NCBI GenBank assembly: GCA_965112155.1 | Contig: OZ218103.1 | Source: Podarcis liolepis | Lineage: Eukaryota | Direction: 5' to 3' (one strand) | Length of the DNA stretch: 64,000 nucleotides | Position numbers and translations under genes: made by a program | The notes under the pieces: generated by a model | Told to the model about the DNA's origin: nothing | The model's database searches: none | The model's input: the letters and a program-made list of their open reading frames with translations, nothing else | Shown: one piece after another, positions 36,015 to 39,291 of the stretch | Position numbering within the stretch: position 1 is the stretch's first letter | How the letters are laid out: each line of letters begins with the position of its first letter

Positions 36015-36020
36015 TTTATT
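36015..36020 (-). terminator. Probable poly(A) signal of the PTH4-like gene
   Basis: First AATAAA on the minus strand, about 440 nt after the stop codon. An ATTAAA variant lies near 36297-36302. Confidence 0.45.
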
Positions 36021-36461
36021 ATAACTTAAACCCACATTGCTAAAGGGGAACAGGCACAAAAGACCTCAAGTAATTATATAGGTGGTGGAAGCAGGAAATG
36101 AGTAGAAGGGACAAAGAGTGAATACTTTCCATGTACCCCAGCAGAATCTGCATGCACAAATACCTCAATAATATTGTTCAACAAATGCAAAGGAGTGAAG
36201 TAGCAATAATAATATATAGCCCCTGGCAATATTGCTAACAGTTATAAAATATTTGTGCTATCTAGAAGGGAAATTTTTAAGCCCTGCACATTCCTGTTTA
36301 ATAATCGGAATAAGGGGGAAATGTTCTGGCCTTTCAACAATGCAAAGGAGTAGTAAATGGCACAAACGCACATTTTCTTTGTTAATCAACTTTTCTTTTG
36401 ATCTCCCTCAGTGTATATATCTCAAGTAGCAGATGGACTGCAATAGGTTCGGTCAGGAAAT

Positions 36462-36852
36462 CTATGTCTGGGTGCTGAGATTTCTTTTGCCATCTTGATC
36501 TCCACCTTGAAATATGTCAGAAAGGTCTTGCCGGTCCTGATTACCCTTTATATTCTTTAGATACTGCAACACATTTGTTTTCCTGAGGACAGCAACAGGC
36601 TCTTCCTTCTCCAGCAATCCCAGCAGCAGTTGCTTCATCATTTCTAGAGACTCTTCTCTGCCAGTTCCATCAGAGAGATCGGAGAGGTCTTGGTTCTTTG
36701 GTGAGGTCCACACAATGTGTGCCTGCGGGATGTCCCTGCCCACGGCTGTGTGCACTCCTCCCATAGCTTGGTGGAGCCAAATCAGTCGGTTTAACTCTTC
36801 ACGGAGATTTCCTTTGTTATGCAAGAACTGGAATTCTGCCACTCCTCTCTTA
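36462..36852 (-). CDS. PTH4: PTH4-like exon 3: end of pro-region, KR site and 127-aa mature region (36845-36465)
   Basis: 3' part of ORF 36462..36899. The true exon starts after the CAG acceptor (AG at 36854-36853); stop TAG is at 36464-36462. Confidence 0.9.
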
Positions 36853-38441
36853 CTGAAATGTGAAAAAGCCAGTACTGTGCTTGAGAAGCAGAAACACATT
36901 CACAATAAAGCAAGAAAACATTTCAAGTATATTAGTTAAAGATGAGGAAACCAAGATCACTAAGGGATTGTGTCCAATCTTGTTGAACTATCTGGTGCCA
37001 TGTAAGTGCTTGCAAAAGTAGTGTGTGGTATTCCTGGGGTCTGAACCAGTGCCGACCACTTCAGACGTTTGACATCTGCATTCATTGTTTTCTTTGTAGA
37101 ATTGGACTGATCAATGCAAAGTTGACAGTCCCCAAAGCTATGCAAGTCATTGTCCCACAGCTCCTCATCTGCCTTTATTTGTAATTTTTTAAGGCTGGAA
37201 TCCTATAAACACTACCTCAGAATAAGTTCCATTGAACTCAGCAGGGCTTCCTTCTAAGTAGGCGTATAGGATTGGACTGTAAGGCTACAGTTCTATGCAT
37301 GCTTGTTTTGGAATATGTTCCACTGAATTCAATGGAATTGATTTTTTTCATGTCTGAATTTGTACAGATGTTTCTTATTTCCCTATCTCTTGCTAAGAAA
37401 TCTTTTCATGGCTACCCTTTAGCAAATATTAAATGAGTGTTCAGTGTTGAACTTGGAGTTTTGTTTCAAACTGGGAAACCTAAAATTCAGTAAAGGTTAG
37501 TTACTGATAGATGCACAACCAACTTTAGCCGAATATATGAAAAGACAGATTACTGTACAAGCATATTAGCATTGTCACTGTTCACATGGCCTTTTCAGGT
37601 TCTTGCATTATAGTTTCTATCCAGCGACTTTTTTGCTGTGTAAAGTGAAGGTGGCATAGCTAGCTATTATTCACAAAACCTGTCTGTTCATTATAGTACC
37701 ATTGATCAAAGAGAGCCCACTGAGGGCCATACTTGGGAAGCTTCCATTTTTAAATAAGCCGCAGTTCCTCTTTATGCCCAGACTGGAGAGATTGTAGCAA
37801 GAGGTACTAACCTTATGACCAGCAGACCATGTGAGCCTGAGGTTCATGTGGGCTCACTCATGTGGTGAGCAACTGGTTTCCCATTATGTCTAAACCAGGC
37901 TAATATATGTGAACAGGACAGACATGTGAATAAAACATTTAGCTGTCTTCATTGTTTCTGATTTAGCTATGGATTTGTGCTTTGATGTGTTAAAAGAGGT
38001 AGCTCTCTCGCCCTTATCACCACTATCTAGGAATGAACAGAAGATCACTTTATAGTTTTCAGAACCATCTTGGAAAGCTCTAACAACAAGAAGACTTTGC
38101 CCTTTCCCTTTGCTATCTTATGACTTTCAGTACAGGACAATCTTGTTTTTAAAGAAAAATCATTTTAAAAATTACAAACGATGCTAAACATATGTTTGCA
38201 CAGTGATCTTCAGAAAAATACATTATATTGTAAAGATTTACTGCAATGTTATCATTTTGCATCCAAAAGTCAACACAGTAAAAAAACAAAACCCCAAAAC
38301 CCATCATAGTAAAATAAAGCTTATCAAAAATTTAACTAAAAAATATTCTTACGTTTTTGTTTCTTGACATGTTGCAAACCAAACAAGAAAAAAAATGGAC
38401 AAAAATGTTACCATCTGTAGATATCTTTGGGACAAAAGCAT
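36462..38441 (-). CDS. PTH4: Parathyroid hormone family prepro-hormone, most likely PTH4 (PTH-L), 159 aa, 2 coding exons
   Basis: Exon 38441-38353 encodes MLLSQRYLQMVTFLSIFFLVWFATCQETK plus 2 nt (signal peptide; donor AC|GTAAGA). Exon 36852-36462 (acceptor TTTTTCACATTTCAG|) continues T-KR-GVAEFQFLHNKGNLREELNRLIWLHQAMGGVHTA-VGR...NLSTQT*. It carries the PTH/PTHrP(1-34) pattern (V2, E4, Q6, H9, G12, R20, W23, L24, V31-H32-T33-A34) after a dibasic KR site, with a phase-2 intron in the pro-region as in PTH-family genes. Family assignment is strong; the PTH4 paralog name rests on recalled sequence and synteny. Confidence 0.9.
38353..38441 (-). CDS. PTH4: PTH4-like exon 2 coding part: signal peptide
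   Basis: ATG at 38441 in AGAAGATG context, hydrophobic core VTFLSIFFLVWF ending ATC. Acceptor CTTGTTTAATAG| gives exon start 38456; the GTAAGA donor is in phase 2, matching exon 3. Confidence 0.88.
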
Positions 38442-39221
38442 CTTCTGTCTTGTAAACTATTAAACAAGATGAAATAAGATGGACATTGAAATGCAACTTG
38501 CAGCTATAACATATTCCACTTAAATAATGGATAGTAAAATTAAACCATAGTGACAGATAGTAAGTATTGGCCTGAAATATATAATTTTTAAAAAAATATT
38601 ATTCTTTGCGTTTTCATATTTACTGTGACGACAAAAGCCAAATAATTTCGTAGTGTATTTTATTTGTATATTAGGACACAAAAGGTTTTAATTTGAAACA
38701 GTAGGAAACCATCTTTTAAATATATATTCCAAATATTCCTGTCATAAATATATTACTGCAATCTTCACTCAGGTTAGTAGAGCCTATGAAAATCAATAGC
38801 ATAATATGTATATAAAATTGTTTACTTTTGGAGGGAACAAAACAAATATTCTGATCTGAACCAGAACTGGTTTTCTAGAAATATGTGAATACACAAAATA
38901 CATCCTGAATGGCACAAGCCATTGGTTCAATTTTTCCAGTACTGTAATCACTTATTGACAGATTTTGTCAATAATATATTTGAGATATATTTGTATAGCT
39001 ACATATAACCGACAATATCTTAATTAAATATTAGTTGAAAGAAAATATTTAACACTGCAACCCTATACATGTCTACTCAGAAATAAGTTCAATGGGGCTT
39101 ATGTTCTGGTAAGGGTATATAGAGTTTTAAGCCCAACAGGTTAAAAATAGCAGTGTAATGTAGAGTACTTACTATTTCTTCTTGTATTGGAGTATGGTAA
39201 AGTTGATTTGTGGAGTCTTAC

Positions 39222-39291
39222 TTGTTGCTAGCAGATCTCTAGTGAGCCTCCTCCTGCAATGACAGTGTGCGCCTTCCTAGCTTCTTTTATA
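39222..39291 (-). promoter_or_regulatory. TATA box, initiator and non-coding exon 1 of the PTH4-like gene
   Basis: On the minus strand TATAAAA lies at 39291-39285, and Inr-like TCATT has its A at 39260 (31 nt downstream). Donor CAA|GTAAGA gives exon end 39222; a second donor ATA|GTAAGT is at 39173. Confidence 0.65.

Follow-up and report, generated by a model that had tools for sequence, protein, structure and literature searches.

The 64,000-nucleotide (nt) window analysed here, a stretch of contig OZ218103.1 from assembly GCA_965112155.1 of the lizard Podarcis liolepis, carries on its minus strand a gene for a hormone precursor of the parathyroid hormone (PTH) family. The gene is a real and intact lizard orthologue of PTH4 (formerly PTH-L), the fourth paralogue of the family and one lost in placental mammals, and the receptor-activating core of this hormone is changed far more in lacertids than in any other animal compared. 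All positions are numbered over the whole window, and the letters were read directly. Each coding exon was translated and searched separately. The gene consists of the following features:

38456–38353, minus strand: exon 2, with 15 nt of the 5' untranslated region (UTR), the signal peptide and the start of the pro-peptide, bounded by canonical splice sites
36853–38352, minus strand: intron (GT...AG) between the coding exons, splitting a Thr codon just before Lys-Arg
36846–36851, minus strand: Lys-Arg prohormone cleavage site, KR or RR in all aligned PTH4 proteins
36744–36845, minus strand: hormone core, residues 1–34 (receptor-binding and -activating region), within Pfam PF01279 and matching PTHrP and PTH peptides
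36465–36743, minus strand: C-terminal 93 residues of the precursor, conserved in squamates, with a Gly-Lys-Arg site near the end
36462–36464, minus strand: stop codon TAG, up to which the exon 3 frame is open
36015–36461, minus strand: 3' UTR, ending in AATAAA at 36020–36015

Exon 2 follows an acceptor with a pyrimidine-rich tract ending in TAATAG and holds 29 codons plus 2 nt of coding sequence, starting from an ATG at 38441–38439 with an A at −3 and ending in the donor AC/GTAAGA (the slash marks the exon end). Exon 3 begins at 36852 after TTTCAG, and its first base finishes the split Thr codon, with Lys-Arg coming next. The coding stretches of 89 nt and 388 nt are thus in phase and give a total of 477 nt (159 codons). 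Within the 3' UTR, a second and weaker poly(A)-type signal, ATTAAA, is present at 36302–36297. An earlier interpretation of the same DNA, made without database searches (the sequence-only reading), had proposed a signal exon at 38456–38353, an exon with the KR site, an in-phase 159-residue precursor and a poly(A) signal, and we were able to read all of these directly on the minus strand. The arrangement is that of PTH-type genes, in which an exon for the signal and pro-peptide is followed by an exon opening with the dibasic site and the mature peptide. The product of exon 2 contains a hydrophobic core of the signal-peptide type at residues 10–23, with a mean hydropathy of up to 2.66 and small residues at A23 and C25. 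Its alignments with orthologues start at residue 1, showing 81% identity to the N-terminus of the Hemicordylus PTH4-like protein over the first 27 residues (E=1e-13) and 66% identity to that of Anolis PTH4 over the first 29 residues (E=1e-12). The hydrophobic core and the homology to the N-termini of orthologues suggest that the precursor starts with a secretory signal peptide. We also noted an imperfect inverted match of 26 nt (77%) between the two introns (37213–37238 vs. 39086–39111), the surroundings of which may resemble dispersed lizard repeat elements.

The exon 3 translation matched the Pfam Parathyroid family PF01279 with 35.9 bits (E=1.3e-8; curated cutoff 22 bits) over exon-3 residues 1–57, and squamate PTH4-like proteins with E values of 1e-53 to 1e-39. 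The proteins of other squamates named "parathyroid hormone 4-like" by NCBI were 55–73% identical, and core residues 2–34 aligned to the solved peptides PTHrP(1–36) and PTH(1–34). As judged from these alignments, the homology matches of exon 3 and exon 2 lie far beyond chance. A profile built from the squamate matches retrieved 191 proteins; among those carrying names, the great majority were bird and squamate entries, plus an axolotl and a lungfish, listed as "parathyroid hormone 4-like" or "PTH4 protein", and orthologues from turtle, alligator and coelacanth were present under other names. We then placed the gene in a maximum-likelihood tree of 49 rows, labelling PTHrP, PTH and teleost PTH4 from source names and the solved human PTHrP sequence. 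The window sequence paired with a lacertid-type open reading frame (ORF) from Logan, P0001 (support 100/100), and fell inside the squamate PTH4 clade (99/100), while a branch with support of 96/99 separated the PTH4 side, including teleost PTH4, from PTHrP. The only mammalian PTH row has a very long branch (4.07) and an unreliable placement. Both the Pfam Parathyroid profile and the phylogeny had been set beforehand as tests of the sequence-only reading, and the gene passed them, grouping with PTH4 and splitting from PTHrP.

Because the annotation of the relatives, the phylogeny and the synteny described below agree, we assigned the gene to PTH4, and the previously proposed PTH4/PTH-L identity therefore holds on the grounds of the PF01279 score, the position in the squamate PTH4 clade and the SRSF3 neighbour. 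An identity as PTHrP (PTHLH) was rejected, since that protein forms a separate clade, is found at another locus in the literature and shares only about 45% of the core positions, being of the RRRFFL type at residues 19–24. We likewise rejected PTH (PTH1), because the neighbours are SRSF3 and an NDR kinase instead of ARNTL/BTBD10 and all nearest relatives are PTH4 proteins. Several core residues that are characteristic of PTH4 without defining it are replaced in the window, which shows F5, LHN, E16 and N19 at the positions of H5, (M/L)HD at 8–10, Q16 and K19. These atypical residues make it less of a typical PTH4 ligand, but do not affect its status as a PTH4 orthologue, because orthology rests on descent, i.e., on the tree and on synteny.

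The neighbouring genes were recognised from the following exons:

45967–46173, plus strand: first coding exon of SRSF3, matching residues 1–69 of solved SRSF3 with E=2e-45, vs. 6e-29 for SRSF7
30003–30134, minus strand: first coding exon of an NDR-family kinase (STK38), best solved match human STK38 (6bxi, E=1.4e-29)
27360–27509, 24326–24559 and 23410–23754, minus strand: further NDR-family kinase exons, among others, with solved human STK38 as the best match

The gene had been proposed to lie between STK38 and SRSF3. SRSF3 was confirmed, and the second neighbour is an NDR-family kinase that best matches STK38, which is not formally separable from STK38L on solved structures alone. PTH-L shows linkage to SFRS3 both on chicken chromosome 26 and in Xenopus, and the counterpart region on human chromosome 6 contains no PTH-L gene (Pinheiro et al. 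2010, PMC3009671). The position next to SRSF3 is thus the published PTH-L/PTH4 locus. In chicken, PTH lies on chromosome 5 near ARNTL/BTBD10 and PTHrP on chromosome 1 near MRPS35 (PMC3009671). PTH4 is regarded as a paralogue derived from ancient genome duplications which was lost in eutherians and is missing from human chromosome 6 (PMC5640766), and the literature agrees in this respect with the sequence-only reading, which had put PTH4 down as reported lost in eutherians and the human interval as not known to hold a PTH gene (PMC3009671, PMC5640766). The PTH4 gene itself is AT-rich (36% G+C) and lies between two G+C-rich stretches at 32000–33400 and 45250–45750. These contain long spurious ORFs rich in Ala, Pro, Arg and Gly. 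They precede the coding exons of STK38 and SRSF3 and probably represent CpG-island promoters. A run of N occurs inside SRSF3 at about 47710–48304.

To quantify the divergence of the hormone core, we used the majority sequence of non-lacertid squamates as a reference and compared each sequence with it. The window sequence was changed at 15 of the 34 core positions, compared to 18 of the 93 positions elsewhere (19%), which corresponds to a core-to-rest ratio of 2.3 (Fisher p=0.011). The pattern was the reverse in all other lineages, with ratios of 0.16–0.9. Even the lungfish and the axolotl differed from the squamate majority at only 8/34 and 5/34 core positions, respectively, and most other squamates, snakes included, showed 0–5 differences. 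The 15 changes are A1G, T3A, H5F, L7F, N9H, D10N, R11K, R13N, A14L, L15R, Q16E, G17E, K19N, M22I and N26Q. They were all common to the window and P0001, and the other 14 were also found in P0010, a Podarcis muralis model without residue 1. No further core differences were present among these three sequences, vs. 3/93 elsewhere. This lineage-specific burst is also seen in the tree, where the lacertid stem branch has a length of 0.31, compared to 0.03–0.1 for most squamates. Conservation of H5, D10, Q16 and K19 reaches at least 90% over 29 PTH4 proteins, with the lacertid-type sequences among the exceptions, and G1, F5 and N13 are absent from all 137 other unique cores of the family. Changes were depleted at the 11 core positions that are at least 90% conserved across PTH, PTHrP and PTH4, only two of which were affected (p=0.04), although the pattern used to extract the cores fixes several of these positions and inflates their apparent conservation. 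The two changes are N9H, which restores the family consensus His9, and D10N, which introduces the residue of mammalian PTH.

We looked for intermediate core forms among the Logan squamate matches and found none. Gene conversion from PTH or PTHrP was rejected as a source of the lacertid core, given that the changes are spread out and no paralogue core contains G1, F5 or N13, as was a compensated frameshift, because the conserved residues V2, E4, Q6, L8, G12, L18, R20, L21 and W23 alternate with changed ones. An independent acceleration was observed in the PTH4-like protein of Sceloporus undulatus (P0013), with 10/34 core changes including V2L, compared to 1–2 in the related Anolis and Phrynocephalus, so that the squamate PTH4 ligand may have come under weaker constraint more than once.

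Conservation of the C-terminal 93 residues extends across squamates, and the region, which contains motifs such as LLQYLKN, is still recognisable as far out as the lungfish. PTH4 of sauropsids retains a dibasic site close to the C-terminus, and in most squamates a Gly precedes it, which constitutes an amidation-type signal. An AlphaFold model of the exon-3 protein, calculated with 29 orthologues, reached a mean predicted local distance difference test score (pLDDT) of 52.8 and is usable for helix positions only; it placed low-confidence helices over hormone residues 14–28 and at exon-3 residues 65–82 and 91–101.

Upstream of exon 2, a putative start region was composed from two motif-based features:

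39284–39291, minus strand: putative TATA-like element TATAAAAG, identified by motif only
39222–39260, minus strand: putative non-coding exon 1, ending at a donor motif, with an alternative donor after 39173

The candidate initiator is the A at 39260, located 31 nt downstream of the TATA-like element in the context TCATTGC, which departs from the strict YYANWYY consensus at one position. Because of this one base, a search for the spaced TATA-to-initiator pattern returned no match. The two possible donors of exon 1, after 39222 or 39173, have the contexts AA/GTAAGA and ATA/GTAAGT, and no ATG is present inside the putative exon 1 or anywhere in the proposed 5' UTR. The frequency of TATAAA in the window is about 1.1 per kb.

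The kind of gene, its locus and its occurrence in squamates are already known, and the window gene fills an annotation gap. NCBI names "parathyroid hormone 4-like" in Elgaria, Varanus, Hemicordylus, Ahaetulla, Sceloporus and many birds, and UniProt holds the Anolis entry G1KSU8, which also has 159 residues. The only lacertid-type entries found in the protein searches were P0001 and P0010. P0001 is an unspliced ORF of 145 residues which is 98% identical to the window, with the frame open in both. P0010 (A0A670IHM8) has no signal peptide, interrupts the Lys-Arg site and is unrelated at its end, and its first exon is identical to an ORF inside the intron of the window (37238–37351, minus strand), the identity covering the 16 residues at its start. 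It appears to be an erroneous gene model, but may also represent an alternative transcript. A correct database model thus seems to be missing only for lacertids, and the previous description of the squamate gene as poorly annotated applies to these, but not to the other squamates in which NCBI names it. The NCBI models of Elgaria and Varanus (P0002 and P0003) have 166 residues, seven of which are extra, stand before Lys-Arg and match intron sequence upstream of the acceptor, indicating a different acceptor from that in Anolis, Hemicordylus and the window. As the sequence-only reading had itself conceded, the gene family is not new: PTH4 is known from fish to birds, and its SRSF3-linked locus was published in 2010. 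In the literature searched, we found no work on the function of PTH4 in any reptile.

Taking all lines together, we consider it probable that the gene codes for a lizard PTH4 which is made as a secreted precursor of 159 residues and activates class B PTH receptors with an altered core. For its expression, processing, receptor activation and physiology, on which the intact hormone axis presumed in the sequence-only reading would depend, we infer the following course. The signal peptide of about 25 residues would direct the precursor into the secretory pathway, where a prohormone convertase would remove the short pro-piece ending in Lys-Arg. The freed N-terminus would then serve as the agonist, with the helix of residues 15–34 docking on the extracellular domain of the receptor and residues 1–14 inserting into its membrane core. 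The lacertid core keeps the family-wide contact residues V2, E4, Q6, H9, G12, R20, W23, L24 and H32. Because H5F, D10N, R13N, Q16E and K19N replace residues that are nearly invariant in PTH4, the lacertid hormone probably deviates from other PTH4 hormones in potency, duration of signalling or preference for receptors. Residue 5, which is Ile in PTH and His in PTHrP, sets prolonged vs. transient signalling at PTH1R, and swapping it exchanges this behaviour (PMC9586930). The same residue governs potency at PTH2R, whose Arg305 is reported to repel Arg19 of PTHrP and to pair with Glu19 of PTH (PMC8364112). In human numbering, ligand positions 5 and 19 are contacted by L289, L292, Q364 and Y429 of PTH1R and by Y318 and R305 of PTH2R (PMC9586930, PMC8364112). 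Chicken PTH-L(1–34) activates PTH1R with a half-maximal effective concentration (EC50) of 7.7 nM and PTH3R only weakly (Pinheiro et al. 2012, PMC3483286). Lizard genomes carry PTH1R, PTH2R and PTH3R (PMC3483286).

We tentatively propose, as a possibility we would not yet bet on, that the lacertid ligand was re-tuned rather than degraded and may serve in nature as an agonist of PTH2R, as a long-acting agonist of PTH1R or as both. H5F would place a bulky hydrophobic residue at the switch position for duration and PTH2R potency, K19N would drop the charge repelled by Arg305 of PTH2R, and W23 is already PTH-like. If true, this would be a lineage-specific switch in the pairing of hormone and receptor. 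Osteoporosis drugs are based on the 1–34 core of hormones from the PTH family. The combination of Phe5 and G1, N10, N13 and N19 with a conserved rest of the precursor may be seen as a natural experiment on the limits of the pharmacophore, which also allows asking whether the receptors co-evolved. The value of the finding lies in this overhaul of the ligand; as a gene, it is an ordinary PTH4 orthologue at a known locus.

Several observations speak against a functional hormone. The TATA box, initiator and non-coding exon 1 are putative and rely on motifs that are common in an AT-rich region, and the protein searches yielded no lacertid model of the RefSeq type, which would also fit low or absent expression. 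Changes at 15/34 positions in the normally most conserved part of the protein could mean that constraint on the ligand function was lost, and since G1, F5 and N13 are unseen in 137 other cores, activity should not be assumed from homology. One alternative is relaxed constraint or an early pseudogene, in which case lacertid PTH4 would no longer matter as a hormone and its frame would simply not yet be broken, perhaps owing to redundancy with PTH and PTHrP of the kind put forward to explain the loss in eutherians. The core changes of the window exceed those separating lungfish and squamates, several of the residues are unique in the family, a correct lacertid gene model was not found in the protein searches, and the 10/34 changes of Sceloporus indicate that constraint on squamate PTH4 may loosen in places. 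However, neutral decay would be expected to affect the entire protein, whereas the divergence of the C-terminal 93 residues is limited to 19% of positions, and the gene has kept an intact signal peptide, Lys-Arg site and stop codon as well as intact splice sites. In addition, changes are depleted at the family-invariant core positions, and the window and P0001 have the 15 changes in common (14 being covered in P0010), with none extra in the core. We therefore regard decay as unlikely.

Alternatively, the gene may be functional with an N-terminal core that has lost classical agonism, and selection may keep the C-terminal part, maybe for peptides released via the Arg-Lys and Gly-Lys-Arg sites. 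The inverted pattern of conservation in lacertids, with a core-to-rest ratio of 2.3 vs. 0.16–0.9 elsewhere, would fit this explanation, as would the C-terminal motifs and the near-C-terminal dibasic site conserved across sauropsids and the helices predicted with low confidence at 65–82 and 91–101. Yet only one mature peptide is stated to arise from the precursors of PTH and PTH-L (PMC4354418), no C-terminal function is known for PTH4, and the family-wide pharmacophore residues kept in 1–34 are unexpected in an unconstrained core, which leaves a shift of function to the C-terminus as the least probable of the explanations considered. On balance, the evidence leans modestly towards continued function of the hormone, because the C-terminal domain, signal peptide, cleavage and splice sites are intact and changes of family-invariant core residues are depleted.

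Other squamate PTH4 proteins, including Anolis G1KSU8, resemble that of the window in precursor size, signal peptide, Lys-Arg site and C-terminal domain, but their core is almost invariant (0–5 changes; 10 in Sceloporus), compared to 15 changes in the window. Chicken and Xenopus PTH-L share with it the two coding exons, as in PTH, and the linkage to SFRS3/SRSF3 (PMC3009671), and the 1–34 region is the active part of PTH-L (PMC3009671, PMC3483286). Bird PTH4 proteins are 43–48% identical to the window protein, and the 'MHD' motif of all investigated PTH-L peptides (PMC4354418) is LHN in the window. PTH2R and TIP39 are absent from birds, but PTH2R is retained in lizards (PMC3483286). Zebrafish Pth4 belongs to the same PTH4 orthology group in the tree and provides the best functional model, although its identity is only about 26–31%. 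It originates from hypothalamic neurons, regulates bone mineral via phosphate and activates PTH receptors (Suarez-Bregua et al. 2017 in PMC5640766). PTH and PTHrP are members of the same Pfam family and paralogues of the window gene, with PTHrP lying beyond the 96/99 branch, and the hydrophobic residue 5, N10 and W23 of the window hormone resemble PTH and not PTHrP.

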